Shown here: positions 7,665-54,900 of the stretch, in pieces
How positions within the stretch are numbered: the stretch's first letter is position 1
Layout: each line of letters starts with the position of its first letter
From: Ginglymostoma cirratum
Taxonomy: Eukaryota
NCBI GenBank assembly: GCA_024137785.1
Contig: JAHRHZ010000084.1
Location: forward strand, 7,406,093-7,470,092
DNA: 64,000 bases
Reading direction: 5' to 3'
Translations under genes and position numbers: made by a program
Notes under the pieces: model-generated
The model's database searches: none
What the model saw: the letters and a program-made list of their open reading frames with translations, nothing else
Told to the model about the DNA's origin: nothing

Positions 7665-7689
7665 AAGTGGTAGGTAGTTGGAAGCTCAA

Positions 7690-18346: not shown

Positions 18347-18480
18347 GTAAAGATCTCAATTATCTGCCGATTTCTAGATGGGCAGTCGGCATGCTGGCAA
18401 TCTTATTATTGATAATCATTTTGACAAGACTCGAGTTAAAGGTATCAGGTGCTAAGAACGTTTGCCATTTTGCTGAGTAA
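18347..18480 (+). pseudogene. Orphan TM exon copy 2, donor mutated, reads through to a stop
   Basis: Acceptor CCTGTAG intact. GKDLNYLPISRWAVGMLAILLLIIILTRLELKVSG, then GTAAG has become CTAAG at 18452 and the frame continues AKNVCHFAE* to 18480. No V or C1 exon found between 9.8 and 18.3 kb. Confidence 0.75.
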
Positions 18481-19780: not shown

Positions 19781-19827
19781 AGTCAGAGTTAACGTTTCGG
19801 GTCCAGTGACCCTTCATCAGAACGACT
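19781..19827 (-). ncRNA. Minimal type-I hammerhead ribozyme motif, core intact
   Basis: Minus strand: GUU-CUGAUGA-A-GGGUC(ACUG)GACCC-GAAA-CG-UU-AAC. Full core, 5-bp stem II, palindromic ACGU stem III and short stem I. Confidence 0.7.
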
Positions 19828-28103: not shown

Positions 28104-28192
28104 TCTGTGTGTTTGTGTGTGTTTATCTGTGTGCTTGGTTTGTGTGTCTGCGTGTGTGTGTGAGAGAGAGGGAGAGACAGAGAGAGAGAGAT
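28104..28192. repeat. Imperfect (TG)n(AG)n microsatellite (paralog 60969-61038)
   Basis: Directly visible. Confidence 0.9.
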
Positions 28193-28220
28193 GCAGACTA
28201 AATGGTAAACATGTAAGACA

Positions 28221-29406
28221 GAGATAGTAGGAAGAGCAGATGCTGGAGAATCTGAGAAAACAGGTTGTAGAGCTGGATGAACACAGCAGGCCAAGCAGCA
28301 TCAGAGGAGCAGGAAGGCTGACGTTTCGGGCCTAGACCCTTCTTCAGAAATGGGGAAGGGTAAGAGGATTCTGAAATAAATAGGGAGAGAGGGGGAGGCG
28401 GATAGAAGATGGGTAGAGGAGAAAATAGGCGGAGAGGAGACAGACGGGTCAAAGAGGAGGGGATGGAGCCGGTAAAGGTAAGTGTAGGTAGGTAGGGAGG
28501 AGATAGGTCAGTCCAGGGAGAACGGACAGGTCAAGGGGGCGGGATGAGGTTAGTAGGCAGGAGATGGGGGTGGGGCTTGAGGTAGGAGGAGGGGATAGGT
28601 GGGAGGAAGGACAGGTTAGGGAGGCGGAGACGAGCTGGGCTGGTTTGGGGATGCGGTAGGGGGAGAGGAGGTTTTGAAGCTTGTGAAATCCACATTGATA
28701 CCATTGGGCTGCAGGGTTCCCAAGCGGAATATGAATTGCTGTTCCTGCAACCTTTGGGTAGCATCGTTGTGGCACTGCAGGAGGCCCAGGATGGACATGT
28801 CGTCTGAGGAATGGGAGGGGGAGTTGAAATGGTTCGCGACTGGGAGGTGCAGTTGTTTGTTGCGAACCGAGCGTAGGTGTTCTGCAAAGCGGTCCCCAAG
28901 CATCCGCTTGGTTTCCCCGATGTAGAGGAGGCCACAACGGGTACAGCGGATGCAGTATACCACATTAGCAGATGTGCAGGTGAACATCTGCTTGACGTGG
29001 AAAGTCTTCTTGGGGCCTGGGATTGGGGTGAGGGGGAGGAGGTGTGGGGGCAGGTGTAGCACTTCCTGCGGTTGCAGGGAAAAGTGCTGGGTGTGGTGGG
29101 GCTGGAGGGGAGTGTGAAGCGGACAAGGGAGTCCTGGAGAGACTGGTCCCTCCGGAAAGCAGATAAGGGTGGGGAGAGAAAAATGTCTTTGGTGGTGGGG
29201 TCGGATTGCAAATGGCGGAAGTGTCGGAGGATGATGCGTTGGATCCGCAGGTTGGTCGGGTAGTACGTGAGGACGAGGGGGATTCTGTTTTGGTTGTTAT
29301 TGCGGGGAGGGGTTGTGAGGGACGAGTTGCGGGAAATGCGGGAGACACGGTCGAGGGCGTTCTCGACCACTGAGGCGGGGGGGGCGGGGGAAAGTTGCGG
29401 TCCTTG
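28221..29406 (-). mobile_element. 5'-truncated Penelope-like retroelement (GIY-YIG endonuclease end), young
   Basis: ORF 28616-29062 reads CTRCGLLYIGETKR...RFAEH...VANHFN...EQQFIFRLGTLQPNGIN. Flanked by a 13-bp duplication, AACATGTAAGACA (28208) and AACATTTAAGACA (29407). Empty site at 61055-61067. Confidence 0.92.
28318..28350 (-). ncRNA. Minimal hammerhead motif in the Penelope terminus
   Basis: Minus strand: CUGAAGA-A-GGGUCUAGGCCC-GAAA-CG-UC. Stem I is weak. Confidence 0.55.
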
Positions 29407-33960: not shown

Positions 33961-36029
33961 GGACCAAGGCTGTAATGTGCTCTGAGGAGGAGTAAATTGG
34001 TGAAACTCAAATTGAACGCTACTGAGCAGATTATTGTCAAGCAAGTTTCGCCTCAAAGCACTGTGGATCGCACATTTCAGACCTCTGCTGAAATAAAGAG
34101 TAGACTGATGGAAAGTTACTTGCTCAGATTTGATTTCTGCTGCTTTCTTTTTCTGGACTGGACATTAAAGTGGGCTACATTACAAACTGTTGGGTAGATG
34201 CTACTTTTTTGATTGCGCTGAAAGAGCTTGCCTGGGGCACTTTCCGCAACACGCGTTTTTCCTGTTGATGTAAGGACGTCCACAATTTTTGCAGTAGCAG
34301 TGGCCAGGTACGCCCAACAATTGAGATACTCACAACCTGGCGTTGTGGAGCTGCAGTTCCGCTCCAGCGATAAATTTCTGTGACTGTTCCGCTTTTTTAA
34401 AATGAAAACCACTAATGAGGATAACCGATTGGTATGTACGGCGCACTGCTGACCAGTTACTGGGGATGATCGAGGAGTGAGGCCGTGTCAGGCATTTCAA
34501 GTAGCAATCATTCTTCATGATCAAACCGTCACTGCACTGTCGCTTCTTCAAGTTGAGTCGTCTCAAATTCGTTGCATTATCATTCGCCTCTCAAAAGCCT
34601 GAAAATTGTATTCATGTTGTTATCCAAGAACAGCTATGACATCCAACACTGTGTCGCTAATTAGTTCAGATATCAGGACTTCTTCACATGCATCCGAAAC
34701 AGCGGCAGTCATAATTAACCTATCTAAAGGTGAAACCGTGAGGAAAAATTTAAATGATGGAATTACTCACATTTTACTATTGCAAGAAGATCCGAGATGT
34801 CGGTGGAAGTAAACACTTGGAGTACATGTACATTGTTGAGAGGGACAGGGCAAATGAAAAGGCTGAAATACAACGAGGATTCCTGACATTATTATTAGAG
34901 AGATGATGCATTAAGCAAGGAAGTGGCACGAAACATTTGTTAAGAACTATTTAGGTGTTAACTGGAGTTTTCTGTACAAACCTGCAACAACCCTTTCGGG
35001 AGAGTTTCACGAAAATGGTAACACCGCAGAAGATGTTTGCCAGAATGTGAACAAAGTCGTGGGATTTAACTATGCGGCGAGACTGGAGAAACAAAGGTTT
35101 TTCTCATTACAGTCGAGGATGATGAGGCGGATTGATGCCATAGTCCAGAGATCACAATAGCTTAAAAGGCAAATTAAAGGAAACTGTTCCCAGTTACAGA
35201 AGGGCCGAAAATCAAACAACAGAGTTGAGGTGATTGACAAGAGCACTCGAGGCTAATGAGAAGAAGCGGCGTACAATCTAGTCCTGTCCCGGGTTCACCC
35301 ATGCCGTGACGAACAGAACTCCTGAATGATATGCACCGACAGGTTTAGAATTAAGCCAATAGAAGACGGAACAGAGTTGGAAATACCAGAAGCTGAATAC
35401 TGTGAATAAGCAAAGTGCCACTTCCATTTGATGAAGAGTCGAACTTGAAACATTAACTTTGCGTTCTTCTCACACATGATTCCAGGCCCTGATTTTTTCC
35501 AGCAATTTTGCATTGTTATCTTTTCTTTTAATCGCTATCAGCAAACGATGGTCTCTTTATTCCGCTTCTCCTCGCACGTCCATGTGGAAATGCCAACACA
35601 CAGGACCCTGAATAATACTTGGTGTTTTTCAGGCTGCGAAATTAATGCTAGTAACTGTGAACCAGATGAACAGGGGTCTCGAATTTCATATCTACCGTGA
35701 GTCAAAATAATATTATATTCTAAAATCCTAAAGCGGAGAAAAGGAATTCATCAGGGTTAATAGTCCTAACTGCAATTCCAATTATTACTGCTTGACATCA
35801 TCATGGATTTGAAGATCCCAGGTTTAAATATTTTACCACTCTCATTGTCTTGCATATAGGTGAATACTTTAGGTGAGTTACTGGGGAGGTGACCATGCCT
35901 GCGACTTGAATCGTTATTTTCAGACCGAATCAAGGCCGGAAAGTTACTGTTCATAACTAATCGGAAAGCATTGTTCCGGCAGTGTCAGAAACACATTGTC
36001 TTCAGATGGAAATTTCTCAACAATCAGTG

Positions 36030-36065
36030 GTCAAGGAACCTCCCACTTCCCATACTTCTGGGACT
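36030..36065 (+). promoter_or_regulatory. Possible ETS-type motifs upstream of the leader exon
   Basis: AGGAAC and CACTTCC about 130-150 bp upstream of the ATG. Motifs are short and could be chance. Confidence 0.25.
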
Positions 36066-36180
36066 CAATATTCGTCATGTGATGTCTCAGGTCATGGTCA
36101 TAGGCTTGATAAGTTTTTCCGACCAAACCATTCAGGACACCATCCTCATTTACAACAAGAAACCCACGAACTTTTCTTTT

Positions 36181-36241
36181 ATGTCTATGTTCATGACTGT
36201 TACAGTACAGTACATGACTCTACTTGGCATAATTTGGTCAG
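36181..36241 (+). CDS. Probable leader (signal peptide) exon
   Basis: MSMFMTVTVQYMTLLGIIWS followed by CAG|GTACAT in phase 1. Splices in frame to give ...LLGIIWSAAEATSG-KVKQ. Alternative in-frame ATGs at 36187, 36193 and 36214. Confidence 0.6.
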
Positions 36242-39200
36242 GTACATTTAGTTACTGTATGCTCCTATATTAAAATCCGTTATATCCTATTTTACAAGAT
36301 AGCGCAATGGTTCTGCTTTGTATAATTAAACATTGTGCTGCTCCACTTCGATTGCTATAACTTTCAATGGCTCTTGCATTTTACTTCGTGAAGTTCTTTT
36401 CCTGGTATATTCTTGCTAAGCAGGGGACTGAAAGTTTGTCAGCATAAGAGAAGGCGGATTTGTAGCTACAATTAGAACAGCCATTAATGAATAGCCGAGT
36501 AGGTGCGAAGGGCAGAATGGCCTATTCTTTCTCCGTGTGGTGTACGTTGGTTTGCAGATATTATCATCGCTCTTCTTTCTTTTCTGATAGCCGCTGAAGC
36601 AACTTCGGGTAAAGTGAAACAGTTCCCTAAATTTTTGAGCGTTAACAGAGGTGAGAATGTTTCCATCTTCTGCACGTTTCCTATCTTTGAAGAAACTCCT
36701 GATGTTTATTGGCGGAGACGGGGTGAGGTGTCGGTTCTGGAGGCAGACAGCAGAAAGCGATTCAACGCAAAAAGGGGAACAAGTTCTTTCTCAGTCCTAA
36801 ACGCTAGTGTTGCTGATGCCGGAGTGTATTTCTGTGAAGTTAAGCACCAGCGAAGGTCGATTGGAGATGGGGGTGGCACACAACTGACTGTTTATGGTAA
36901 GGATCATTGTACCGGACAGGCTGCTTCTCAGTTTTATTAGATACTTGCAAAGTTTTTATATCGCGGGACGAAGATTCTTCGAATTGCTTTTACGTGGGTT
37001 TGTACTTTCTTTGTCACTGAACTCGTGTTAAATAGCAATTGATTCACTCTCGCAATTTGAACACTTATGTCTGAGACCAATTTCACTCGCTTGCTCTCCT
37101 GATATTTGAAAGGGTTCTACTTCCAAAGAGTTTTATTTTTGTCCAGTTGCAACTATTATCAAACCAAGATACCGAAATAAAATAAAAGTTTAAATTTAGG
37201 TTTGAAATGAATCAATGTGCTACGAGGACAAAGTCCCTTCTCGCCAATTTAACGGGGCCGATGTGCGACAGTGGGAACAATTCTAACATCTCCTGGGTCA
37301 TATCTTTTGCCCTCCTTTATTAACTCAAATCCAGGGCTAAGGAATGATAGCATTCTGATTCTTGACTACGCACTTAATGCAGTTCTGTTGGCCATAAAAT
37401 CTAATGAATCTTGCAAATTAATAATGACTTTAACTTATATTTGGAAAATTTCTGAAAAGTATGCTCGGAAAGAAAACATCGAAATTGTTCTCAAGAGTTT
37501 CACAAAAAATGGAAAGTTAACAAGGCCCCATATATTAGGTTACATGACGCCTATACACTGATTCGCATCTGTTAGATATAAAAATAGGGCTGATAAAAGC
37601 AGAGGGGAAAATGAGCCCAGTAGACAGAATGAACTTCGAGAAGTTCAAAAACTCTGGAATTATATAATGCCTCAGAGTTAGAATTTTCCATGTTGGATTC
37701 CGCATCTGTGCAGTTGTTATGAACTTCACACTAATCCGTAATCCATAAAAGCTACGGAGGAGGTGATGGCCTCGTGGTATTATGGCTAGTGTATTAAACC
37801 AGAGACCCCGAAAACATTTGGGTGACACATGTTCAAATCCTGCCACTGCAGGCCACCCCTGCAATAAACCTCTGGCATTAAGAATCAACTGTTAATTTTT
37901 GTGAAAATTCCACCTGTTTCACAAATTTTTTTAGAGCAGGAAACTGCCATCCTTTCCTGGTCTGACCTACATGTGACTCCAGCCCCACAGCAATGTGGTT
38001 GACTCTTAACCGCCCTCTGGACAATTAGTGATGGGCAATAAATACTGCCTGGCCAGCGACGCCCTCGCCCCGTGAATGAGTAAAGAAAAGGATAGAACCA
38101 GAGAAGCTGTTCAAATTAGTGGAGAACAAACACAGGATCCATATTTCAGATAATTTGCAAAATAGTCAGGTGCCACGGTCGGAAAATCTTTCAAGAAAGT
38201 TGTTCAAGGATCTGGAGTGCACTGCGGAAGAATCCAGTGCAATTATGGCGTTCAAAAGGCAAAGTTATGAAAGGGATGAAACCAACAACGACAATTGCAG
38301 TGGATCTGGCAGCATTTGTGGAGAGAAATGGAGTTAAGGTTTCCAGTTTGGTCTGACTCTTCTTCAGGAGAAGTTTTGAACATTGTACGAGACAAAATAT
38401 TTCGTACCGCAAACCATCATGTATGCGGTATGGGGATAGGGAATTCAGTGACAGACTGGCGTGTACTGTTTCCGATAGGTTTGCTCAGGAATCCAATTGC
38501 TGCTAACCCCAGTCCTTCTCCAGGATCTCATTCAGAACATTGCCCCTGCCTCCCTCAAGTAACCAATCCTGGGAGATCCAACATCTTTATTAATCATTTC
38601 ACATATTCCTACTATTTTGTTGTCGGGCTGGAACACTTCAACGTTTAAAATTAAACGATAAAGAGCGTAAGTATTGTCACTGTATGAATGTAACAGCGTC
38701 ACGGGTGCAGTCAAATGAGGATGTGCTCATTTAAATTTAAACAAAACAGAAACTTTTTTTTCCTTCAAGTGTCGCCGTTGCCACTGAAACTCGTTCAAGT
38801 TGAAGGGGTTTCTGCGGCTTCTCTGAAACTCGTGTGCAAAACTGCTGCCTGTTACCCGGAGCCTGTCCGTATCTCCTGGCGAAGAGATGCTGCCGAAAAT
38901 TTGACCGGAATACAAACGGTAATAAAGACTGCGGATGGACTGTATGAGGTTTCCAGCTCTCTGGAAGAAGCGCAGCCTGTGCGGAGCGGAGTGATTTATA
39001 CCTGTCTGGTGTCACATGTTTCCCTTCCTGTACCCGTCAGTGTCAACTTCACCGTCAATCCAGGTAAGACTGGAAACACTGGCAGCAGTGAGAGGGACCA
39101 GCGCTCCAAGCAGCGTTTAGAGAGTAGACATGCAGCTGAGCAGCTGTCCAAACCAGAGGGAGGAGTTGAGCGTGGAAAGTATTAACTCGCAAAGCGCCAC

Positions 39201-42200
39201 AAATGGGAAAAGAATCAAGATATTCCTGAAATTTTTACCGAGTAAAATGAAATTACAACTAAAATGTTCTGTGACAATCCCTTCTAGATCCTCTGCAACA
39301 TACCCTGAATATGTGAAAATAGCGATATGTTCGCCTGGTTTGTCAGCACTGTGAATTCGAACTCTCTCGCCCTAAACGTCTACTCCTCTCTAACTGTCTC
39401 GTTTTCCACGCTCCCTAAAATCTGCCTTAACTTGTTCTGACACATAATGGAGAACAGCAGATGCTAGAAATTTGAACTAAAACGATAAATTTCTGGAGAA
39501 ACTCTGCAGTACTGCCAGCATCTCTGGAGAGAAGGCACAGTTAATATTTCAGTGACCGTTTTACAGAACTGATAACAGCTAGAAAAAAGTGGTAGTTACG
39601 CCGAAGACAGGTTTAAGGTGGGGGCGGAGACGGAGCCTAGAGGAATTGACAGTTGGGCAGGCAAACGGATGGGTGATAACACGTCAGGAAGAGTGAAAAG
39701 CTGCAAATGGGGACCATGAGTCCGTGAAATTATGTTGGCTGTTTTGAAAGCAGCTCATGTAATGGCAGGACGTGGGGTGTGGGGATGGGTAAAGGACATG
39801 GAAGGAATATTCAGGGCCTAAAATTATTGACTTCATTGTTGAGTCCTGAAAGCTGCAGGTCCGCATGCGGAAAATGAGTTGCTGTTCCTCCAGCTTGCCC
39901 TGAGCTTCGTTGGAGCAGAGCAGCAGTCCCGAGGCAGAATTGTTGGCTGGGAGCATGGCAGTCTGTTGATGAGGCAAAAGGTTGGCAGATCAGGGGACAT
40001 TTTTGGAGACAGAACATAGGTGTTCTGCAAACCAGTCTGTGTTTCGTCTCCCCAGTGTAGAGGTGACCACATTATGAGCAACGAATATGGTTGAGTGAAG
40101 TGCAGGCACATCCCTGTTCCACCTGGAATGTGCATCTGAGACCTTGGATAATGATGGTGGAAAAAGTAAACAGGCAAGTGTTCCACCTTCTTTGCTTGCA
40201 TGGCAAGGTGATTTGGAAGTGTAAGGGGCTATTGTGAGTGGAGGATGAGTGGGCAAGGGTGGCAATATCCTGACAAAGGAGGGAGGACGAATGTTTGTCT
40301 GCTGGCCGCATCCCATAGAAGGTATCATAAATGATGAGCGTTGATCTTTCTCTTGGAAATTGAGGACAAACAGAACCCTATCATTATTGAGGGAGTGAAG
40401 AAGATGAGTGAGGGCAGAAGTGTGGGAGATGGATCAGACATGGTTGAGGGCTGTCTTAAGCACGGTAGCAGGGAATCCACAGTTGAGAAAACATGGTGGA
40501 CATTTCTGTGACATGAAGGTAGCATCATCAGAACAGGCGTGCTGTACATGGAAAAACTGGGAGAACAGAATGAAGTCTTTACAGGAATTGGCGTGTGAAA
40601 ATGAATAGTCCATGTAAATGTGGAAGTGCTTGGGCTTGTACTAAATACCGGTGGCCAGCCTAAGCTGGATTGGAAACACAAATGTCGAAGAAGTGATGTG
40701 GGGAATAAGAGATGGACTGGGTTAAAGTGAGAGCAGGGTGGAAATTGAAAACAAAATTGATAGCTTTTTCCAGGTTTGGATGACAGTGGGAAGCAGCACC
40801 AATGAAGTCATTGATGAACCAGAGAAAGAGTTGTGGGAGGGACCTGAGTGGGATTGAAACACTGAATGGTCCATGTACCCATCAAGGAGACAGCCATAAC
40901 TGAAGATTATGCCGGTATCTTGGCCAAACCTTTGATTTGAAGAAGCTGCGAGGAATTAAAGGAAAAGTTGTTCAAAGTGAGGACGAGCTTGCCAGGTGGA
41001 GGGTGTGGTGGATGGTTACGGTTCAGTCCTTTTCTCCAAGGAGAAGGGTTTCCTTAAAACCATCATAATAGTGATGGATGTGTAAAGGGATTGCACATCC
41101 ATAGTGAAGATGAGGCAGTTGCTGCCACAAACTGGAAATTCCAAGCTGATGTAAAGTGTCACAACAATCATGGATGTAAGTGGAAAGGGACCTGAGAAAG
41201 GGGTAAAATATTGAATCAAGGTAGGAAAAGATAAGGTCTGAGTGGCAGTAACAGGCAGAAACAATTGAAACCCCCAGGAAGTTATATTGCTGGATTTGAG
41301 TTAGAAGGTAGAAGCAGGCTCTATATGTTGGTGGAGTATGAGTTGGAAGTCTATGGCAAGGAGACTACCAGATTCCCAGCCCATTTACTTCCTCCCTCCT
41401 CGCGATCTAATCCTCCAGACACAACGTCCACGTGAAGCAGTGATTTATCTTCACGTCACTCTGTTCATTGATAACAGTGTGGTCTCCTGTACACTGTGGA
41501 GACAAAACACGCACTGGGCAATTGCTTTGCAGAAAACCTTCATTCTGTCCTCAAAAATGACATTGAACTTCCAACTGTCTGCCATTCAACACACCTCCAT
41601 GCTCCTTGACCGACATTTCTGCCTCAGGCCTGCCGCAGAGTTCTAGCAAGCCTCAGCACAAGCTGGAAGAACAGTGTTTCATTTTCAAATTGGGGACATT
41701 GCAGCCGTCATAATCAATATCGAGTTCAATAATTTTAGTGTCGGAATACTGCTCCCATGTCCTTTACCCACCCTCGCGCCCCAGGTCCTGCCAATGACAC
41801 GAGCCGCTTTCAAAAGAGCCAAGCCATTTTCATCTAGTTATGATCACTATTTTCAGTTTTTCTGTCTTCCTGGCATGTTGTCATCCATCCCTTTGTCTGA
41901 CCACTTGTTGTGTTCTCTCTTTTGGCCTCCATCTCTGCCCATCCGCTCACTTTTCCCCCCTCCCACTTCCTACACCGTCTGAGTTTCCCCAGCAGTTTCT
42001 GTTTCTGATCCACGCGTTCTAATGTGCTTTATGTGGCTGGTTTGTGTTTGATGACGGTACTCTGGAGTGCAATGGATGGTTTGTCATGGCAAAGGAGTTA
42101 AATAAATGCAAGGTGCGTGTATCAATTGCCAAAAGTTACAGTAGGTGTTAAACCTGATTAAGTGTTTCAGCTGGTGCTGACGTAACGCGACCAGATTAGT

Positions 42201-45200
42201 AACGTGTAAGAGTTTTTCCTCTTAAGAAACAACCTAAAGGGAAGATTCCTGAGTCTCTATGGAATTGTTGCCTTCATATATTTTATTATGGGTTAGGGGC
42301 TGGTTCGTCATTTCATACACATTATAATTCTTGTACACACGCTAACCATTGAAATAATAGGGATCAATTTCTATTGACATTTATTGAATGTTATCGTCCT
42401 GGGATACTGCTTTGCAGACCACCCTCCTGTATCTGATCCACGATTCTCTCTGTTTAAATCTCGCTGTATTCTGCAGTTCTTACTCAAATATTATTGATCC
42501 TGTAGGTGAAGATCTCAATTATCTGCTGATCTCTAGATGGGCAGGTGGCATGCTGGCAATCTTACTATTGGTAATCATTTTGACAAGACTCGAATTAAAG
42601 GCATCAGCTGGTAAGAACTTTTGCTGCTTTGCTGAATATTTTTATTTTCCAAGACACAATCATACTTGTTGGAGACATAAAGAGCAGAAGAAAGTGATTA
42701 ACTATAGAGGAATAGTGAGCACTTTCCGACATCTTTAAATACTGAAATTGATATCACAAGTAGTTATGTGATTAGCAATTCAACATGACAATATAAACCG
42801 GATTTATTTCAAACCCTCGTTTGACTGTTTACTCGAATCATACACAACCCTCCAGTTCTAAAACTGGCAGTGTAACTGTATTCATTTTAAAGTGATATCA
42901 GAGTAGCCAACTGGAATAACTGCACAGAGGCTGGCATCCCGTTACAGAGTCACCCTTTATTTACATGTGCACCGTAGACTAGCTGTGGCCATCCAGCTCA
43001 GAGACAGTCCCTGAAGTGAGGAGATCCTGAATCCCTTGTTTTTTTTAAACTTTTATAGGTGTGCAAATAACATTATTTACATACCACCACCAGGAAAAAC
43101 ACCAATGTGACGAAAGCATCAAGATCAAGCAGAGCCCTGAGGGGCAATACCTGCATGAGAGAAAAAATAAGTGACGGTGGGAGTAGGAATCAAATCAAAA
43201 TACAGCTTGTGAGGGGAAATAAGGCACTGCACAGTCCGCGGTGCCCACTTCTCCCGAAAGGCATCAAGAGCGCCGGTGCGCATCACGTACTCCTTCACCA
43301 GGATCACCCAGGCGCGGACGTAGCCACAGAACTGGGGCAGGCATTCGGACATAACGACCACCTCCAAGTCCCGCTGGCTGGACCTATTAATGTCCAGCTT
43401 CGCCAGGCCCAGGAGCAAACCCACGAAAATTTCCTTTGGCCGGCTTCGCCCCCCTCCGCAACGGATGCCCAAAGATCAGGAACGTGGGGCGGAAGTGCAG
43501 CCCAAAAACACAAAAGGAGGTCTTTCAGGTAATTCAAAAGGGCGTGGAAGCGCCCCCACCCAATATATACACGATCCACCGGCTCCACAGACAGTTGGTC
43601 CGGGTGTCCATGAACCAAAATAATCTGCGTTTACACGGGACCGCTGCATGCAACCCCTCCATCACCGATCCCCGAGGGAAAGGGGAAGGACTCCTGCGTA
43701 GAGGGCCTTCCACTGGGGATCCCCGCCGCCTGGTGACAAATGAGCGTTGCAAGGCGTTTCGAGGTATGGGATGAAGGAGAAGAGGTGGATGGTGTGCATC
43801 AGCAGTCTGTGCATGGTTTGCCGTTTCACATCTTCTAAAGATACAAATGTGAAATTCCGGAGATGGCTCAAGTTGTGGGACACAGGCTCCCCGGGGAGGT
43901 ACGGGATTCTGGGTCCAGTCTGAAATTCCATCTGAGGAGGGGTACGCACAGACGGGATCCCACCGCACACTTGAGCGTCCACCAGTTGGTGCACAACATA
44001 AGAGTCCGAGCACCGCCGTTTTAAGGCATTGAATGACGACTGTGAATCGGACGTCTACCACAGCTCTGCATGCCAATTCCTGTGGCAGCGTCCAGCCCAG
44101 ATCCCCGCCACCCAGCACATCCCCGACTCTTGTCACTCCCGCAGCCACGGCCCTCCCCTCCAACAGCCAATCGAACTGGCGACGACGGAGGTGCTAATTC
44201 CTGAGCAGTGGCACACCTGCCGGTGGTAGGCGCGATGTGACTCAACCATGTTCCAGACAGTGTTCAGGTCATAAGACCAGACATAGGAGCAGAAACTGCC
44301 CATTCAGCCCATTGAGTCTACTCCGCCATTCAATCATGGCTGATAAGTTTCTCAACCCCATTCACCCGCTGTCTCCCCGTAACCCTTGATCCCCTTAACA
44401 ACCAAGCACCTGTCTATCTCCACATAAATTTACTCAATGACCTGGCATCCACACCCTTCTGTGGCAGTGATTTCCATGGATTCACCATCCTCTGACTAAA
44501 GAAGTTTCTCCTTATCTCTTGATTTAAAATGTCTTTACTTTTAGGCTGTGCCATTAGGTCCTAGTCTCTCCTACCAATGGAAACATTTTCCCAACATTCA
44601 TTCACTGTTCTGTAATTTTAACTTAGATCCCCCCTCATCCTTCTAAACTCCATCGAGTATAGACCCAGAGTCCTCAAACGCTCCTCATATGTTAAGTTTT
44701 TCATTCCTGCCACCATTCTCACGAACCTCCTCTGAACCTGTTCCAGGGCTAGTACATCTTTCCTGAGATATGGGACCCAAATCTGTGAGTAATACTCTAA
44801 ATGTGGCCTGGCCAGAGCCTTATACAGCCTCAGAAGTACATCCCTGCTTTTATATTCAAATCCTCTCAAAATATATGCCGAAGTTCTGTTTGACTTCCTA
44901 ACTACTGACTCAACCAGCAAGTTTACCTCGAGAGAATCCTGGAGAAGAACTCTCAACTCTCCTTGCACTTCAGACTTGTGAATTTTCTCCCCATTTAGAA
45001 AATATTCCATTCATCTCTTCTTACCAAAGTGCATGGGCTCACAATTTCCCACATTGTACTCTATCTGCCACTTGTTTGCCCATTCTCCTAACCTGTCCAA
45101 ATCTTTCTGCAACCTCCCTGCCACCCCAACACTACGTGTCTCTTTACCTAACTTTGTGTCGTCTGCAAACTTAGCCAGAATGCCCTCAGTTCCTTCATAT

Positions 45201-48200
45201 AGATCATTAATGTATAAAGTGAAAGGTTGTGGTCCCAACACTGACCCTTATGTAACACCACTCGTCACCAGCTGCCATTCTGAGAAAGACCCTTTTAACC
45301 CCACTCTCTGCTTTCTGCCAGACAGCCAATCTTCTATCCATGCTAGTACCTTGCCTCTAACACCCTGGGCCCTTATCTTACTCAGCAGCCACCTGTGCAG
45401 CACCGAGTCAAAGAACTTCTTGAAGTCCAGATAGGTGACATCTATTGGCTGTCCTTGGTCTAACCTACTCGTTATTTCTTCAAAGAATTCTAACAGATTT
45501 TTCAGGCATGACCTCCCCTTAACAAAACCGTCCTGACTTTGTCCTATTTTACCAAGGACTTCCAAGTATTCAGAAATCTCATTCTTCACAATAGACTGGA
45601 AAATCTTACCCACAACAGAGGTTACGATAATCAGCCTGTAATTTTCAGTCTTTTGCCTGACTCCCTTTTTAAATAGGGGTGTCACGTTCGTGATTTTCCA
45701 GTCCTCTTGGGATCCTCCCTGACTCTGGCGATTCCTGAAAGATCACTCCTAACACCTCCACTACCTCTTAAGCTATCTCCTTAAGAATTCTGGGGTGTAG
45801 TGCATGTGGTCCTGGTGATTTACACACCCTCAGGCCTTTCAGTTTTTCTCGCACCTTCTCCTGGGTGATGGCCGCCATCCTCAGATCTGTTCCATGACTC
45901 TCAAATTTTTGGGAGATTACTCATGTCTTCCACTGTGAACAGAGACTTAGCTGCAAGTGGATCCGAATTGGGAGCTGATTATCAAAGGATATACATCTCA
46001 TTGAAAACATAGGCGGATGGGAAGAGGTGGTGGTGTTGCCTTATTAGTCAGAAATGAAATTAAATCAATCTTAAGAAATGAAGTAGGGTCAGACGGTATA
46101 GAATCTGTGTGGGTAGAGTTGACGAATCACAGGGGTAAAAAGAAATCACAGTTGGAATTATGTATAGGCCTACAAACAGTAGTCAGTAATTTGCAGTAAT
46201 TATTCAGTTCCTCAGCCATTTCCTTATTTCTCACTACTATCTCCCCAACGCCAGTTTCCATCAGTCCAATGTCCACTTTTGCTTCTCTTTTGCTCTTTAT
46301 ATATCTGAAGAAACTCTTACAGTCCCCCTTTATATTATTGGCTGGCTTACTCTCATGTTTAAACTTCTCCCTCCTTATTTCTTTTTTTGTTGATTTCTGT
46401 TGATCTTTGAAGGTTTCCCTTTTCTCTGGTGTCCCACTGCCCTTTGCCACATTATTTGCTTTCTCTCTTGATTTATGCTATCCTGACTTCCCTAGTCAAC
46501 CGTGTTTGCCTCATTGTCCGTGAACCATGCTTCTTTTTCTTAGGGATGATTTTTTTGCTGTATCTCCTGAATTACTCCTAGAAACTCTTGACATTGCTGT
46601 TCTGCTGTCTTTACTGCAGGGGTCCTCTCCCAGATAATTCTGCCCAGTTCCTCCCTCGTGCCTCTGTAGTTGACTTTATTCAGCTGTAATACCATTACCT
46701 CTGATTCTATCTTCTCCCTCTCAAATTTCAGAGTAAGTTGAGTCATATTATGATCACTGCCTCCTAAGGTTTCCTTCACCTTAGGCTCCCTTATCAAGTC
46801 TGCCTCATTGCACAACACTAAATCCAGTATTACCTGTTCCTGAGTGTGTTCCACCACAAGTTGCTCCAAAAAGCCATCTCGTAGACATTCCACAAATTCC
46901 TCTTCTTGCAATCCAGTACCAACCTGATTTTCCCAGTCCACCTGCATATTGAAATCCCCCATGATCACCGTAACTTTGATTTTTGTTACATATCTTCTCT
47001 ATCTCCTTGTGTATCTTGCGCTTCAGCTCCTAACTACTGTTTGGAGGCCTGTAATGATCTTTGTTTACCTCTGTGGTTCGTCAACAGTACCCACGCAGAT
47101 TCTATACCATCCGACCCTACTTCGTTTCTTACAATTGATTTAATTTCATTTCTGACGAATAAGGCAACCCCATTCTCTCTGCCCACCTGTCTATCTTTTC
47201 AATAAGCTGTATATCCTTCGATATTCAGCTCCCAATCCCGATCCCCTTGCAGCCATGTCTCTGTCATGCCCACCACTTAATATTGACCAGCACTGCAAGC
47301 TCATTTACCTTATTTCTTATACTGTGTGCATTCAGGTATAACACCTTCAGTCCTGTATTAACTGTCCCACTTCTCATTGTCACTTGTTTAACCAGTGTGC
47401 TTGAAGTATGATTTCTAACCCCTTCCGAACACTCTGTCCTATTTGTGTCTGTGCTGGAGAATTAAATAACCTCTCCTAAATTTTCCTTTCTGGACATTTT
47501 TTTCCTCATATTTTTCAATACAGTGAAATCTACCCCTGCAGATGTTAGCCTGCAGCTTTGTTCCCCACTGAGGGATGTTTTACCCTTCCCTTCCTCTCAC
47601 ACCCCACTTTCTGGTTTAATGTCCCATTGACCAGCCTATTTACCCTTTTCACCAGAACATTGGTCCCAGCTCGGCTCAGATGGAGACCATCCCAACGGTA
47701 CAGATCCCTCCTGTTCCAATACTTATGCCAATGCCCCATGAAAAGGAACCCCTCTTTCCTGCACCACACTTTTAGCCATGTGTTTACTTCCCTTATTCTC
47801 GAGTCCCCATGGCAATTTGCACGTGGCTCAGGCAGTAATCCAGAGACTATAACCTTGAGGACCTGCTCCTTAATTTCATTCCTAGCTCCTGATTCACAGT
47901 GAACAGGTCCTCTTTCCTAGTCTTGCCTATGTTGTTTGCTTTGATGTGGACCACAACAACTGGATCCTCTCCCTCCTTCTCCAATATCCTTTCCAGCTGG
48001 TCATAGATATCCCTTACCCGGGCAACGGGCAAGCAACACACCATACAGGACTGTTAATCCTGCTTACAAAGCATACTATTTATTCCCCTGACTATAGAAT
48101 CCCCTCAACTACCACTTGTATTTTTGCTACCCCCGTGATTGGCGTCTCGAGCCACGGTGCAGTGGTCAGTTGTGTCATCCTCCCTGCAGCCCTTTTCCTC

Positions 48201-50976
48201 ATCTATACTGGGAACAAGTACCTTGCACCTGGTGGACAAGGTCAAGAGCTGAGAATCCTCTGTTCCTGAATGCACAATCCCTCTACCTGCCTCACTTGCA
48301 GTCATACCCTGCTAACCTTGGCCACTGACCAAATTTGAAGCACTTAATCTGCCAGGTGTGACTGCCTCCTGAAACATAGCGTCCAGGTACTTCTCCCCCT
48401 CCCGGATATGCCACAGTATTTGAAGCTCAGATTCCAGCTCATCAACGCTGAGCTGAAGTTCCTCGAGCAGACAACATTTGTTGCAGATGAGGTCACCATT
48501 GTTCACAATGGGATCAGCCAGCTCCCACATCATACAGCGACAACACATCAGCCATTTCCAGTTGGTTAATTACTTCATTGAATTAATTAAATTGATTGAT
48601 ACTTCTTGGCTGTGTTCTTTCGCAAATTTAATGCAAATTTGGGTTCTGGTAAAAGACATGCAGCATCCTGAGAGCGACATCCAAACTGTCACAGTTGATA
48701 AATAGGAGCTAGGTGTTGTAGTTGAGGTTACACACCCAGCAGAAAAAATACGTTGCCAGGGCACAACCCCTAGGAGGAGGCTCAATACAAAGGTATTGCT
48801 GTAAGGTCTGAAGGCAAAAAATCACCATCTGCGTGTGGATACACACCAGTGACTGACTGCCCTGCTCAGTAGGCAGATTCAGAACCTGTGCTGCAACCCA
48901 GTGCATCTTTTTGTCCTAGGAGAAGTGGACCAACGTTCTCTGGATTTCAGCAACAAAACCAGGAGGATGGACCAAAGGGACAAGATAGTACCACAACGTG
49001 GAGGCCACCAGCTGGCTTATGACGAGCACTCGACTCCTAAAGACAGCACTCCAAGCAGCCCTGTCCAGAGGCCTAGGCAAGGTGAGAATTTGACCTTCAG
49101 CTCCTGCTAATTCGCCAGCCAGGATTCCACGGCCCAGCTAAGGTGGACCCCCAGATAGAGGAAATGGATGGTGCTCCAGCTGAACCCCCGCAGATCCTCC
49201 GGCAGAGAGTCCACCCACCATGGACCAACCAGGAGTCTGGAACATTTAGCCCAGTTAATCCCGGCGGGAGACCAGCCGCTGAGTACACCGCCTGGCACTC
49301 TCTCATCCTCCCCAGTTCAAACGGGTCAGTGAAAGTGAGGAGCACATCGTCGGCGTAAACCAAAAGGACCACGCCCGTAACAGGCCCGCGCAGAACCAGT
49401 CCCAACAATCACCTCCGCAAGAGGCACAGAAAAGGCTCCACGCACAGGGAGCACAAGTGGCCGGACAAAGGGCAGAACCTGAGGCACCCCTCTCTTGAAG
49501 CGAAGGGGCGCCAACAGGGACCCTTTAACATTAACCAGATACTCTGCGGTGGTGTACAAAAGTCGGATCCATGCGATGAACTGCATCCCGAACCCGAATG
49601 CTTGCAGAGTGCCGAGTAGGCACTCATGATCGACCCTGTCAAATGCCTTCTCCTGATCCAGAGACAGGAAGGCGCTTGGTAAACAAGCTTTTCAACAAAA
49701 ATGAACCAGGTCCCAGACCAGGTGGATGTTGTCATGAATCCTCCGGACTGGGACAGTGTCCAACTGGTCCAGGTGGATCACGTGGGCCAGAACGGAAGCC
49801 AGGCGAGTAGCCAACACCATGGTGAAAATGTTGTAATCATGCTGAGGAGGGAAACCGGACGCCAGTTTTTGAGAGAAAATAGGTCGCCCTTCTTTGGCAG
49901 CAGCACCATGACTGCCCTGCAAAGGGGCAGCTGTCCGGCCTTAGTACACTCTGCCAGGACCTGCATGTAGTCGCCCCACAGGACATCCCAGAATGCCGTG
50001 AAGAACTCCACAGTCAGCCCATACAGATTCAGGGACTTGCCCCTCACACCTGTTTATATTGGTCAGCCAGGGCTCCCTTATTGGCCCAGGCTAACAATGC
50101 CAATCAAAGATCAATCAATACGATCCGCCTAGTTCCAATCACTACGCCAACCCGTTTCACCTTATTGCTAGATTTTACCTCCAAAGTAATTTCACAATGC
50201 AAACTGGACTGTCAATTCACTGTACTATAAGAGAAAGGATCTACCCTGTTGTGAATAGCGCCAAGGTAGCATTTGGGAAGATAATATACTCCACACTGAA
50301 CTGTAACTGTTGGTAATGCAGGTCACCCTTGTCGCCTGTGCACTCAGTAAATTATTCCCACAAACATTCATATTAGATAAAGCACAGGTAGTCCAAACAG
50401 TCCCTCCAGACTCTCCATCATTCAATAAAGTTATGGCTGATCACTTAGTGTTTCGAATTTCACATTTGAAAATATTCCCATTTCATTCCCCTTGTCTAGC
50501 AAGAATCTCAGTACTTCTGCTTTTAAAATATTCAACCATCATCTTCTGGAGCAGAGTTCCAAACTGGCACTATTTTCTTAGTCAAAAGAAACCCTCCTCA
50601 TCTCTGTCCATAAAGGGAAAACTCGAATTGCTAGACCGTATCAAATGGTTCTGGATACACCCACAAGAGAAAATATTCTTTCTATGTCCACCTTGTCAAA
50701 ATGGTTCAGCGTCTGACACACTACAGCCAGGTGACGCCCCACACTGCCAAAATCCAGTGGAAAGAAGCACAGTCTATATAATTATCCTCATAACACAACC
50801 CGTTCATTATTAGTGTCAATCGAGTATAACTTCTCTGACCGGCTCCAACATATTCATTTATTTGTTGTTATATTTGTGTTTTTACAATTTACAATCAATA
50901 TAATTTTCTTTTCTTTCCTTTAGATGTTAGAAGATATTCTGCGAAAGTGGATGAAGCTCAATACCTGGTAAGGTGA
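36181..50976 (+). CDS. Spliced gene model: IgSF membrane receptor, leader-VJ-C1-TM(Arg)-short tail, about 272 aa (SIRP/NKp30-like architecture; family not assigned)
   Basis: Exons 36181-36241, 36591-36896, 38770-39063, 42506-42610 and 50924-50976 are joined by GT..AG introns, all phase 1. They total 819 nt with no internal stop. The 3' end is uncertain because there is also a GTAAGG donor after 50967. Confidence 0.8.
36591..36896 (+). CDS. Ig V-set exon with a germline-encoded J-like segment (VJ domain)
   Basis: Polypyrimidine tract plus TAG acceptor at 36571-36590 and G|GTAAG donor. Protein has B-strand Cys (SIFC), C-strand Trp (VYW), DAGVYFC and GDGGGTQLTV (GxGTxLxV). Confidence 0.93.
37756..38089 (+). 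mobile_element. tRNA-derived SINE
   Basis: A-box-like TGGCCTCGTGG, B-box-like GTTCAAATC, core ctacatgtgactccag..gcaatgtggttgactcttaa and an A-rich tail. Confidence 0.8.
38770..39063 (+). CDS. Ig C1-set exon, intact
   Basis: Acceptor TTTTTTCCTTCAAG and donor CAG|GTAAG; 294 nt, phase 1-1. Motifs LVCKTAACYPEPVRISW, DGLYEVSSSL and YTCLVSHVSL match the C1-set pattern (Cx4[F]YP, W, DGxY, YxCxVxH). Confidence 0.93.
39440..42020. mobile_element. Degenerate Penelope-like element with an inverted arm (minus to about 41365, then plus)
   Basis: Minus-strand remnants such as GKLEEQQLIFR and HWGDETQT; the same GIY-YIG region recurs on the + strand at 41420-41760. Confidence 0.7.
42506..42610 (+). CDS. 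Transmembrane exon with an N-terminal Arg, intact
   Basis: CCTGTAG|...CTG|GTAAG; 105 nt, phase 1-1. Encodes GEDLNYLLISRWAGGMLAILLLVIILTRLELKASA. Conserved as an ORF in three copies in the window. Confidence 0.88.
43040..44269 (-). mobile_element. Tx1-like (L1 clade) LINE, 3' part
   Basis: AGVTRVGDVL and LLLGLAKLDINRS...FREKWAP; T-run at 43039-43046 is the poly(A) end. GC-rich relative to its surroundings. Confidence 0.8.
44270..48641 (-). mobile_element. Near full-length degenerate CR1 LINE (ORF1 zinc-finger/esterase; ORF2 APE endonuclease and RT)
   Basis: ORF1 pieces CCRCMMWE..ICNKC, VVVHIKANNIG, WDGLHL. ORF2 pieces IMGDFN, ILDLVL, GSDHN, TPLFKKG..ENYR, KFADDTKL, RPHLEY. CR1-type 3' UTR near 44270. 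Many frameshifts. Confidence 0.93.
45940..46195 (+). mobile_element. Inverted CR1 endonuclease fragment inside the CR1
   Basis: + strand GRGGGVALLVRNEIK..IESVWVEL, the reverse complement of about 47030-47260. Confidence 0.8.
48642..50047 (-). mobile_element. Tx1-like LINE, RT part, 5'-truncated
   Basis: GLTVEFFTAFW, LLPKKGDL..KNWRPVSLL and VYADDV. The reading frame is continuous with the 43040-44269 piece across the CR1 (..VFYQ|DLNTVWNM). Confidence 0.85.
50924..50976 (+). CDS. Candidate cytoplasmic exon
   Basis: Strong acceptor TTTTCTTTTCTTTCCTTTAG. Phase 1 gives DVRRYSAKVDEAQYL, then either the CTG|GTAAGG donor after 50967 or read-through to VR-stop at 50976. Confidence 0.65.
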
Positions 50977-51639
50977 CAATATGTTTTCATTGAAGGCAGT
51001 TAGGACGGAATAGCAAGAAATATTGCAATCAACTGAAAGGTTTTATTGAATCATAGGCTAAAGGAGACTATTACTTCAATGTAGGTCTTTGAAAATAACT
51101 ATTCAATCAGCTCAATTCCTCACTTGTTTTCCCTAGCCCTGTATTTTTTGCACTTATAAGATAATCTCGCCTTCCTTATTGTTTTAAAATAATTTCTATT
51201 GACTCTCCTACCAGATACTCAAGAAGAGTATTTTAAAGTATAGCAGCGGTTTCCGCAAAATAAATCCTGTATTCCCTGATTATTCTGTCAGTAATTATAA
51301 ATATAACCCTCTGGATACTGACCGATCCACAACTGAAAGTATAGTATACTTACTTACTTCGAAATAACTGCACAGAAGCTGGTATCCCGTCACCAAGTCA
51401 CGCTTTGTTTACATGTGCACAGTACACTGGCTGTGGTCATGAGCACAGAGTCAGTCCTGGTTCCAAACACTACGCCAACCTGTTTCATGTTATTCACAGA
51501 TTTATCCCCAAAGTAATTTTGCAATGCAAACTAGACTGTCAATTCACCGTCCCAAAAGAGAAAGGGTCTACTCTTTTGTGAATAGCATCAAGGCAGGATT
51601 TGGGAAGACAAAATATGCTCTGCATAGACCTGCACCTTG

Positions 51640-51945
51640 TGTTTTTTTCCCCTTTATTCATTCATGGGATGACGGCATCACGCCCTGCCCATCCCTAATT
51701 GCCTATATGGCAGTGAAGAGTCAACCACATTGTTGTGGGTCTGGAGTTTCATCTAGGCCAGATGGCAGTTTGCTTCCCGAAAGGGTTTGTCCCAGCACTC
51801 GGCAATGACTGGTAATTCCAGACGTTCATTGAATTCAAATTCTACCATCGGCTGCCGCAGGAATCGAACGGAGGTCCCCAGAACGTTAACTACGTCAGTA
51901 GAGTAACAGTCTACTGATAATACCACTACGCCATCTCATCCCCCG
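51640..51945 (-). mobile_element. Same SINE family, reverse orientation
   Basis: Reverse-complement similarity to 37756-38089; absent from the paralogous site at about 19030. Confidence 0.8.
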
Positions 51946-54900
51946 AATACAGGTCACTCTAGACTAAATGAGACTATTATGGCTATGTTGGTCTTTGAAA
52001 CTAACTATTCAATCAGCTTAGCTCCTCACTCTTTCTCCCCAGCCCCGTTTTTGCATTTAGAAGGTAATCTCTCCTTCCTTTTCACTTTCAAAAAAAATTC
52101 TATTGACTCTCCTGCCGGGTACTCAAGAAGTGCATTCTAAAGTAGAGCAGCAGTTTCCACAAATAAATCCTCGTATTCTCCTGATTATTCTGTCAGAAAT
52201 TTTAATGTACCCTCTGGATACTGATCCATCCACAACTGAAAATATACTTTACTTACGTACTTTATTGAAACTCTGGTATTTGAGAACGACTTTAAGAAAT
52301 CATCCCTTGTCTTTCACTGCCCTGCAAAAAAACAATCATAAATTGTCCAGTCTATCCAGGGTAACTGAAGTTCCTCATTTCGTATACCATTCTCATTAAT
52401 CTCCTCTGCTCGCTCTTCTGATTGTTATATACTTACTGTATTCAAATTCTAAAAGAGGTAAACGCCACACATACTTCCTTACCCTGCCCATAGTTTTAAA
52501 AAAATCAAAGCACTTTTCAGTGCTTTTGTAATTAACTAGGACCTGCTCTCTGGCAGATAAATTAAACACGAGAGGAGAATTCTGATTCTGAGCCTTTATA
52601 ATTCAAACAGATTTTAAAAAATAGGCGATTCGCAGGCGATAAAATTGCTAAATTGAAGCAAAGGCAGAAATCGCTGGAAAAGCTCAGCATCTGTGAGGAG
52701 AAATCAGAGTTGATGTTTCGGGTCCAATGACCCCTCGTCAGAACGGCTAAGTTGAAGCACTTTTACAGCACAACCCGCAAAGTTATGATTCACCCTTGCC
52801 AGCTTATGCTGGGAACTTCAAATGCTGTCCCTGCCTAGTTCCAATGTTAAGGTTATGTCTCTTGACTAAACAGGAACATGAAGTGGAAGGGGCGAATCGA
52901 TTTTTCACAGGAACCAATGATGTAGGTTCAACATAGAATGATGTTCTGTTCAGAGAGTTTTAGAAGCAAAAGCCCAAATTAAAAGTGGAGAAAGTATCAG
53001 GTAATCATCCCTGGATTGTTACCTGAGCCATGTGCCAGTTGGTAGAGGATACACAGATTAGGGACTTCAACACATGGCTCAAACTATGTTGTAGGAAGAA
53101 AGGATATTGATTATTTGGGAAACAGGAAGCCATTTCATTTACTTTGACACTACTTAAACTCAGTGGGGCAATTCTATAACGAAAACTACGCTCAGGTATT
53201 AAAATAGTGGAATGAACAAAATGGTGAAACAAGATTTAACAATTCAAAGAGATAGAATACGACATGAAGACAATAGAACAATACAGTGGTATAGGTGTAA
53301 AAAGAATAAACAGAATGTGACTGTGAATTTAGCATTAGTTCTGCATCTGCGAATGAAGTCAATGTAGGAAAGAAAAATAAAACAGTGCAATTAAAGGCCT
53401 TTTTCTCCGAAACACATGGAGCATCATCAAGAAAATTGGTATGTTAATTACACGATTATAGCTATTGCAAATATTTTAAATTTGATCACTGCTATTGAGA
53501 CATGACTACAAGGTGATCGACGGGAAATAAATATTCCAGGGCACGCACATTTAAAAAGGAATTCAGCATAGTAAAAGAGAAAGGTGACTCTGATAATAAG
53601 GGACGATGCAGCAACATTAGAAAGAAACTCACCAAACAGGGTCACTCTCCGTGGTAAATGGGAATACCTGAAGTCAGAACATGATAGCAGGAACAGTTTG
53701 TAGGATTCATAACAGAAAGTATACTGTGGACCAAGAATTGAACTAAAACTTTGCAGCTTGACATTAAGGAAATATATCTATTGTGGGTGAATTTAATCTT
53801 CGCATCAGTTGTGTCATTTAGATTGGTAAGCATGATCTGGAAGAGAAGTTTGTAATTTTTTTTGTAATGTTTTCATGCAGCAATGCATTTTAGAGCTGCC
53901 TGTCAATGAAGTTATCACAGATTTATTGTTGTATAATCAAATATTATTAAGTAATAATGTCACAAAGTAAGGTCTGCTGGGAAATAGTGATCACAGAACC
54001 ATTTATTTCCATGTTAGCTTTTAAAGTTGCAATCACGAAGAAGAGTTTTAACCTTAAACAAAATCAATTACACCAGTATGAATTGAAAATAGGTTGATTA
54101 TATAATTAAGCTGAATATTATGCTGTTAATTGAATGCACAGTGGGAAAGATTTTAAGGCACAATTCAAAATACCCAAAAATTCAATTCGTAAGATAATAA
54201 AAACTCAGAAAAAAACGTCATATATGGCTCACTCAAGAAGTTAAATATGGGATTAAACTTTAAAAAGATTATATTTCGCACAGAATGGAAACAAGACTTA
54301 GAATTTGAGGTACCTTAAGAACTAACAAGGCAGCATCGGAAAGCTGATAAAATTCGAAACAAATGAAAATAAACTAGCTAGAATTATTAAAACAGATTGG
54401 AAAAGCATTTTAAGTATACAAAATGAAACTTGTCAAAGTATATATTAGTACCTCAGAAGCAGAGACAATATAAATTTTCACAGGGAATGAAGAAATCTAT
54501 GCAAGTTATAATCTAACAATATTTCTTATTTGCAAAAACATTCACATCAGATTGGGAGCTGGAAAATATAATTTTACTTGCAAGGAAAAAAGAAAGAGAA
54601 AGCAGAGAACTGCAGAGCAATTAATTTGACAACATTCCTTATCAAAATTCGGCAATATATTCTAAAAAGAGTGTAAACAATGCAGTTAAAAGTGTGTAGT
54701 ATATTTAGAACAAGTCAACATAGTTCGACAAAAGAGAAATCATGTTTGACAAAAATATTAGAGAGTTTGGAAGCTTTATATTGCAATTGTATTGTAAGCA
54801 TGGGTTTCCAAAATGCATTCAATAAGTTCAAGAGAAAGCTAAGATCTGATGGATTTCAGGGTACTAACATAAATAGAGAACTATTTAACAGATATGAAGC

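Follow-up and report, generated by a model that had tools for sequence, protein, structure and literature searches.

In mammals, the pairing of inhibitory with activating receptors has come up repeatedly as an answer to pathogen pressure, as seen in KIR, Ly49, SIRP, and LILR. When an Arg lies in the outer third of the transmembrane (TM) helix, the pattern is that of FcR-gamma/CD3-zeta pairing (LILRA, PIR-A, Fc-alpha-RI, and NKp46), and a central Lys is the DAP12 pattern; the Lys of SIRP-beta is of the DAP12 type, and the TM Arg of NKp30 (NCR3) pairs with CD3-zeta/FcR-gamma. Here, we analyzed a stretch of 64,000 nucleotides from the nurse shark (Ginglymostoma cirratum; contig JAHRHZ010000084.1), hereafter called the window, which carries on its plus strand, at 36181–50976, a gene for a receptor with a germline-joined VJ domain and one C1-set domain (the VJ-C1 gene). 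In our assessment, it is moderately probable that this gene is an activating-type member of a chondrichthyan SIRP-like paired-receptor family and that it was derived from an inhibitory ancestor.

Nonrearranging VJ genes have been described in the nurse shark, namely UrIg, which consists of a VJ domain and three C1 domains and is secreted, and UrIg2, which consists of a VJ domain and nine or more C1 domains and is membrane-bound (PMC12227049). The chicken PRARP genes are also nonrearranging VJ genes, as cited in PMC10751288. UrIg and UrIg2 resemble the VJ-C1 gene in having a nonrearranging single-exon VJ and a split leader followed by C1-set domains in the same species group. However, they have at least three C1 domains compared with the single C1 exon here, and neither was described as part of an inhibitory/activating pair. 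NKp30 resembles the VJ-C1 gene in its germline VJ domain and its TM Arg but lacks a C1 domain, and no search with VJ-C1 sequences had it among the listed relatives.

The reading frames and splice sites of the VJ-C1 gene were read directly, and single exons or public homologues served as queries in the similarity searches. All five exons were present, open, and phase-compatible, with phase 1 ends for the first four exons and a phase 0 end for the tail exon. All eight splice sites were canonical; each acceptor consists of a pyrimidine tract and AG, and the donors are GTAAG-like throughout, except for that of the leader exon (GTACAT). The exons are as follows.

36181–36241, plus strand: leader exon (first part of a split leader), with ATG at 36181 and the phase-1 donor cag/GTACAT.
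36591–36896, plus strand: VJ exon, a single-exon V domain with a J-like motif, acceptor ...TCTGATAG/ and donor atg/GTAAGG.
38770–39063, plus strand: C1 exon, encoding a C1-set domain, donor cag/GTAAGA.
42506–42610, plus strand: TM exon, encoding the connecting peptide, the transmembrane segment with Arg, and the stop-transfer sequence TRLELKASA, donor ctg/GTAAGA.
50924–50967, plus strand: first cytoplasmic (tail) exon, DVRRYSAKVDEAQYL, donor ctg/GTAAGG, with read-through codons V-R-stop to 50976.

The leader exon showed homology with the N-terminus of the catshark protein P0028 in tblastn, and the exon borders coincide with the domain borders in annotated homologues (...QLTVY/VPPTPLK...).

The VJ exon scored 39.5 bits against Pfam V-set (cut-off 26; E 6.9e-10), and it encodes the two canonical Cys residues, the Trp, the DxGxYxC motif, and two of the four N-glycosylation sites of the VJ-C1 protein. 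The J-like motif GDGGGTQLTV closes the V domain, and its residues G93, G95, L98, and V100 are invariant or nearly so in 28 family members. The layout of rearranging immunoglobulin (Ig) and T-cell receptor (TCR) genes, with a recombination signal sequence (RSS) at the V and separate J segments, was not found here, as V and J share one exon. No RSS heptamer or nonamer was detected at or near the V exon, and the lone heptamer-like match in 36000–39500 was CACTGTG at 39347, within the intron that follows the C1 exon. The C1 exon scored 33.6 bits against Pfam C1-set (PF07654; cut-off 21; E 5.1e-8) and has the landmarks Cys22–Cys78, Trp36, and YTCxVSH, with an additional Cys27 at the Phe position of the family. 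A tblastn search with family C domains did not find a second C1 exon inside the gene, and the protein has no membrane-proximal Cys for an interchain bond.

Structure models were computed with AlphaFold2, in which each domain was predicted singly with family alignments. The V domain was modeled as a compact V (predicted local distance difference test score, pLDDT, 92), and its closest solved folds were shark VNAR, CD79b, TCR V-alpha, and lambda V. The model of the C domain (pLDDT 86.6) had MHC class II beta-2 as the top Foldseek match with a TM-score of 0.82–0.86, that is, a plain C1-set fold. An earlier sequence-only reading of this stretch had claimed five in-frame exons (leader, VJ, C1, TM, and tail), a V exon with the built-in J motif GDGGGTQLTV that ends in a splice donor and has no RSS after it, and one C1-set domain. 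The direct reading of frames and splice sites, the motif search around the V exon, and the Pfam score above the gathering cut-off together with the C1-type fold match agree with it on each of these points.

The relatives of the gene were then collected. An exhaustive HMMER search with the V exon returned giant multi-Ig proteins and proteins of 130–420 amino acids that matched in one stretch, and the records of the latter came exclusively from sharks, rays, or elephant shark. Their automatic names include SIRP-alpha-like, signal-regulatory protein beta-1-like, NCR3 ligand 1-like (NCR3LG1-like), tapasin-related protein-like, and immunoglobulin lambda-1 light chain-like, with SIRP-alpha-like or similar names in most family members. 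The closest relative of the VJ-C1 gene was horn-shark XP_067906043 (labeled P0151), with 70% identity in V (also found for horn-shark P0162) and 62% in C; the identity of the C exon to shark family members ranged from 62 to 68%, and catshark P0165 was 57% identical in V and 67% in C. A word-indexed search with only the V exon gave no match, but its length window leaves out full-length relatives. In further word-indexed searches, P0151 as the query gave 31 matches and a family profile built from 31 sequences gave 53, the strong ones all being chondrichthyan, and there were no bird, reptile, amphibian, or mammal proteins among the matches of either search. Within the reach of these searches, the family appears to be confined to cartilaginous fishes, and with no bird or reptile protein among the profile matches, it is unlikely to be identical with PRARP.

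The family was present in all cartilaginous-fish groups sampled (sharks, rays, and a chimaera) and was multi-copy per species, with many members gathered on single sequences of 99.65 Mb (horn shark), 198.8 Mb (catshark), and 18.1 Mb (elephant shark). The VJ-C1 gene was placed inside the shark subclade in both the V tree and the C tree. Membership of a multigene family, which the sequence-only reading had proposed, is thus confirmed by the closest V and C matches and by the same exon borders. A stand-alone new architecture is not supported, since at least 53 same-family proteins are already predicted in approximately 17 shark, ray, and chimaera species. The nurse-shark VJ-C1 gene is one more family member and no new kind of thing. 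The family had already been predicted by public pipelines, and no description of it was found among the papers searched.

The family proteins were divided into three classes on one common VJ-C1 ectodomain. In class I, the anchor (..LIFGCAGGILAILLLIIIL..) is uncharged and the tail, 70–137 amino acids long, carries motifs such as LTAYATL, TVYAQT, LTYAAL, and AVYAEV; these four, which resemble the immunoreceptor tyrosine-based inhibitory motif (ITIM) or switch motif (ITSM), are all found in the 137-aa tail of P0151 behind its uncharged anchor. Most family members are of this kind, with an uncharged anchor and a long tail carrying several ITIM-type motifs. Class II members have the TM exon of class I with an Arg in it, plus a short tail, and they include the nurse-shark VJ-C1 gene (ISRWAGG), catshark P0165 (IIGRVGG), horn-shark P0150 (GCARGAL), and stingray P0145 (LLISRC). 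Class III members use a different TM exon with Arg and Asp/Glu (..ITRLVLGFLVILGLLGIIVDH..). There are also short-tailed members without any anchor charge, for example P0168, P0172, and P0173.

The anchor of the class III type, a second and conserved activating-type anchor of the family, can be written as ..R.(I/V/L)L.FLVIL.L..IIVDH.., with the Arg near the outside and the Asp/Glu near the inside of the helix. It was observed in P0166, P0028, P0167, P0176, P0083, P0116, P0094, P0200, and P0196, which come from at least six shark genera. A helix with both charges is unusual and could not be matched to any known adaptor rule.

In the V and C trees, the classes did not form clades, and members of different classes adjoined each other within species, as in the pairs P0133/P0150 (horn shark), P0165/P0166 (catshark), and P0169/P0033 (Mobula). 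The Arg of class II lies in three different columns of the alignment, indicating repeated acquisition. SIRP, KIR, Ly49, and LILR show the same, with activating forms emerging time and again from inhibitory ones. In the horn shark and catshark, the V of the short-tailed Arg members was almost the same as the V of an inhibitory gene in the same species, which is why we read the family as paired. Judged by this sequence pattern, the family is a paired-receptor family. In the nurse shark, the 64-kb window holds no intact inhibitory gene.

The TM exon of the VJ-C1 gene reads ..YLLISRWAGGMLAILLLVIIL.., or in a longer reading ..NYLLISRWAGGMLAILLLVIILTRLELKASA, and in a column-by-column alignment it pairs with the uncharged ..FLLIFGCAGGILAILLLIIIL.. 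found in inhibitory members. Its identity to the horn-shark TM exons was 72–78%, and the family type is ..LI.GCAGG.LAILLLIIIL.RLKLKAS... The Arg is residue 10 of the exon and is located approximately five residues into the hydrophobic stretch from the outside; because just 15 hydrophobic residues come after it, it must lie within the spanning segment. A basic residue occupies the same column in all three TM-exon copies of the window (Arg, Arg, and Lys).

The first tail exon matches, in length and place, SKKDSAEAGQAEEQV of P0151 and NNRNSVEAAQREEPV of catshark P0165/P0202, and two 3′ ends are conceivable. If the donor of this exon is unused, V, R, and a TGA at 50974–50976 follow, and a candidate signal for polyadenylation lies downstream.

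51259–51264, plus strand: candidate poly(A) signal AATAAA, 283 nt past the read-through stop, with a putative function.

If the donor is used, the sole homologous downstream exon found starts at 57831 in the correct phase and adds TEQTGRDDNLAYAT and then a stop. A complete ITIM is absent from the tail with either 3′ end, and with the TEQTGRDDNLAYAT-stop ending, the ITIM is cut at Y+2. The same build is seen in catshark P0165, which has an anchor Arg and a tail ending one codon past the equivalent first tail exon. In line with the sequence-only reading, the gene has activating-type features, namely an Arg within the membrane and a short tail lacking a complete ITIM. The tail, given there as about 25 aa, is indeed short, although its length is about 27 aa and an alternative 3′ end through a splice to 57831 is possible.

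The exon at 57831 is 6.9 kb downstream of the VJ-C1 gene and is a relic of the last ITIM-bearing exon of the family; a second relic was found in the upstream part of the window.

57831–57970, plus strand: relic of the last ITIM-bearing exon, reading TEQTGRDDNLAYAT and TGA; the other frame reads LKLANSK-stop-KSEPISQDNCAVYTDLKLTKKEIS-stop.
24517–24655, plus strand: relic last exon of an upstream copy, with the same frameshift and a changed ITIM tyrosine codon.

The tails of P0151, P0162, and P0163 matched 57816–57967 in two different frames (tblastn, E 7e-4 to 3e-3). The exon at 57831 has a good acceptor and formerly carried the last two tyrosine motifs; a shift of one base and a premature stop have broken it, with the TGA exactly at the L position of the family. 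Since the frameshift is common to the copies at 57831 and 24517, the break predates the duplication behind the two copies. A search of 42611–57830 for remains of the LTAYATLNL and TVYPQT exons, which form the middle of the tail, gave nothing credible. A downstream ITIM exon had been named beforehand as a possible refutation of an activating receptor. Such an exon exists at 57831–57970, but it is not intact, and in this dead state it fits the activating reading and shows the history of the gene.

With regard to known receptor families, the family is SIRP-like by its whole design, which combines VJ, C1, a multi-tyrosine inhibitory tail, and charged short-tailed partners. As in the SIRP family, a V domain with a J-like G-x-G motif is followed by a C1-set domain, the inhibitory members carry several YxxL/V motifs in an alternating pattern in the tail, and the activating members combine an ectodomain that is nearly the same with a basic residue in the TM and a short tail. 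The ITIM/ITSM layout of the class I tails recalls that of SIRP-alpha. Mammalian SIRP, however, is V-C1-C1, whereas the shark family has one C1 and does not fit the SIRP definition on its C1 count, and SIRP-beta has a Lys where the nurse-shark VJ-C1 gene has an Arg near the outer border. Like the activating KIR, Ly49, PIR-A, and LILRA, the shark family has repeatedly gained a charged TM residue and had its ITIM tail cut off, with remnants of the ITIM still lying downstream; unlike them, it bears a VJ-C1 ectodomain instead of C2/I-set Ig or lectin domains.

To place the family among Ig-type proteins, the family profile was searched against all solved structures. An IgA1 entry reached 126 bits and shark UrIg2 122 bits, each over three stretches, compared with 95.7 bits over two stretches for the SIRP-alpha ectodomain 2wng and approximately 83 bits over one V-C stretch for light chains. 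The C exon alone scored 12 + 18 + 23 bits over three domains of UrIg2 and 17.5 bits against an Ig C domain, and TCR V domains were close in V-exon searches only. UrIg2 was considered and rejected as the closest relative of the C exon: its rank arises because three domain scores add up, and per domain, it gives 22.7 bits compared with 17.5 bits for the Ig C domain. The per-domain similarity to SIRP and to Ig/UrIg is about equal, and on sequence the family can be placed closer neither to SIRP nor to Ig/TCR/UrIg. The special link to antigen-receptor origins suggested in the sequence-only reading found no support, as Ig light chains, UrIg2, and SIRP-alpha were about equally similar per domain. The ESM Atlas look-alikes of the catshark homologue were also inspected and set aside; they were generic V-C clusters (kappa-like, a SIRP-alpha fragment, CD200, CD80, and tapasin-related) and gave no new lead.

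The intactness of the VJ-C1 gene was assessed at the columns conserved in the family. It departs from them at 1 of 21 columns in V and at 3 of 22 in C, which is inside the range of the annotated members (0–4 departures, with one member at 9), and the nurse-shark gene is apparently intact. Its product would be a type I membrane glycoprotein with a germline-joined VJ domain, one C1-set domain, a helix whose outer third holds an Arg, and a short tail. The anchor would have gained its basic residue where inhibitory members have Gly/Cys, and the ITIM tail would have been lost through the last-exon frameshift and probably also through termination right after the first tail exon. As to expression, adaptor pairing, and signaling direction, we infer that the gene would be expressed, that the V domain would bind the same ligand as an inhibitory sister or a similar one, and that the membrane Arg would recruit an Asp-bearing adaptor dimer with an ITAM (immunoreceptor tyrosine-based activation motif). 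The position of the Arg suggests an adaptor of the FcR-gamma/CD3-zeta type, and DAP12 may also be used. Ligand binding would then activate the cell rather than inhibit it.

Several observations weigh against an activating receptor, and they are best considered together with the other explanations of the locus. The gene could be a young pseudogene or a silent copy in a birth-and-death cluster, whose frames are open for lack of time to break. The neighboring family pieces in the window are dead copies, and intron 4 of the gene has received a large insert.

14–298, plus strand: C1 exon of a dead upstream paralogue (tblastn 55% identity), with two in-frame stops.
9692–9796, plus strand: TM-exon copy with Lys for Arg (ISKW), acceptor AG lost.
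18347–18451, plus strand: TM-exon copy with the Arg kept (ISRW), donor GT changed to CT.
43011–50127, minus strand: inserted DNA in intron 4, approximately 7.1 kb, without a counterpart in the paralogous copy at 18844 and in part of the long interspersed nuclear element (LINE) type.

The homology of intron 4 to the copy at 18104–19045 stops at 43010 and restarts at 50128, and minus-strand open reading frames (ORFs) at approximately 44.6–47 kb in the insert matched RVT_1 (3.5e-15) and, weakly and below the Pfam cut-off, an endonuclease (1.3e-4), so that LINE retroelement sequence is part of the insert. Within the gene, Trp41, the second Trp of the YWW motif of the family, is changed to Arg in V, and Phe27 of the FYP motif in C1 is changed to Cys, creating an extra Cys. 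No RNA was seen for the exons: two small public RNA runs from the same species cover only the intronic repeat at 37938–38050 of the gene region. On the other side, the gene has its five open exons and eight canonical splice sites with good pyrimidine tracts, its number of departures at conserved columns is one that annotated members also show (a chimaera member, too, has Arg in place of Trp41), and the RNA gap reflects a lack of runs and is no negative result. We therefore regard a pseudogene or silent copy as unlikely. A further caution concerns the tail, in that the short 3′ ends of the homologues come from pipeline models reading through a donor and may be artifacts.

The product could also be a nonsignaling decoy or ligand sink that competes with its inhibitory sisters, recruits no adaptor, and has its Arg at the membrane surface. 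Lying close to the outer border of the membrane, the Arg could reach the surface by snorkeling instead of pairing with an adaptor, and the uncharged short-tailed members imply that the family does make tail-less forms. However, the TM exon acquired a basic residue on at least three separate occasions, in different columns, and the retention of Arg or Lys in the three TM-exon copies of the window is hard to explain without selection for a membrane charge; a decoy is accordingly quite unlikely in our view. A relic shaped like a TCR chain, specially close to the nonrearranging ancestor of antigen receptors and assembling as a dimer with CD3-zeta/FcR-gamma as TCR chains do, would account for the layout of VJ, C1, and a basic TM residue, for the presence of shark VNAR and TCR V-alpha among the closest folds of the V model, and for shark UrIg2 being the best whole-chain PDB sequence match of the C exon. 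This match is only a sum over three domains, as described above, and the scores of the family profile per V-C1 unit are much the same for SIRP-alpha, light chains, and UrIg2; moreover, a Cys for the interchain bond is missing, and the charge in the anchor arose secondarily within an inhibitory family and so is not ancestral. Such a relic is the least probable of the explanations considered. A broader form of this idea, in which the chondrichthyan VJ-C1 family is an old sister of the Ig/TCR/UrIg lineage and its Arg members assemble with CD3-zeta/FcR-gamma-type dimers like TCR chains, we hold to be very doubtful; if it were true, a VJ-C1 chain with a charge-held ITAM adaptor would have been an innate signaling unit alongside or before the rearranging receptors. 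The activating-type member of a SIRP-like paired family remains our preferred reading.

The window overall is vertebrate-type DNA rich in retroelements, and several repeats were observed in and around the gene. The insert of intron 4 contains an inverted 210-bp repeat (45939–46148 and 47055–47264). A unit of approximately 600 bp downstream of the TM exon is repeated at 80–90% identity (18748–19350, 50128–50329, 51054–51643, and 51946–52262), with two tandem copies after the tail exon, and the 725 bp holding the tail exon (50330–51054) are almost without a counterpart in the other copies. Intron 3 has an inverted repeat of approximately 480 bp with 72% identity (39654–40127 and 41427–41903), further copies of which lie at 7677–9512 in the dead upstream gene. 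The repeat in intron 2 (37938–38050) is a short interspersed repeat, with a summed contig depth of >12000 in the two public runs. At 28001–30000, a local peak of guanine–cytosine (GC) content of 0.51 with a GC skew of +0.38 was found, together with long minus-strand ORFs (28531–29370, 279 aa) without a Pfam match. A run of N is located at 16646–16786. At gathering scores, Rfam gave no match anywhere in the window, including a candidate hammerhead motif at 19781–19827.

The intact gene and the dead upstream gene were also compared exon by exon. Their C exons (38770–39063 and 14–298) share 55% of residues and gave no blastn DNA match, and their TM exons with flanking introns (42263–43010 and 9507–10099) are 76% identical in DNA. 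This mosaic of C-exon and TM-exon similarity suggests that exon exchange or gene conversion may have taken place within the cluster.

In summary, the route of the mammalian paired receptors is seen at the nurse-shark locus on a scaffold with the shape of an antigen-receptor chain: the gene acquired a membrane charge, shed its ITIM tail, and retains a dead ITIM exon downstream. The family to which it belongs is large and carries misleading automatic names, and its proper description would bear on the search for VJ-C1 genes that do not rearrange and stand close to the origin of Ig and TCR.

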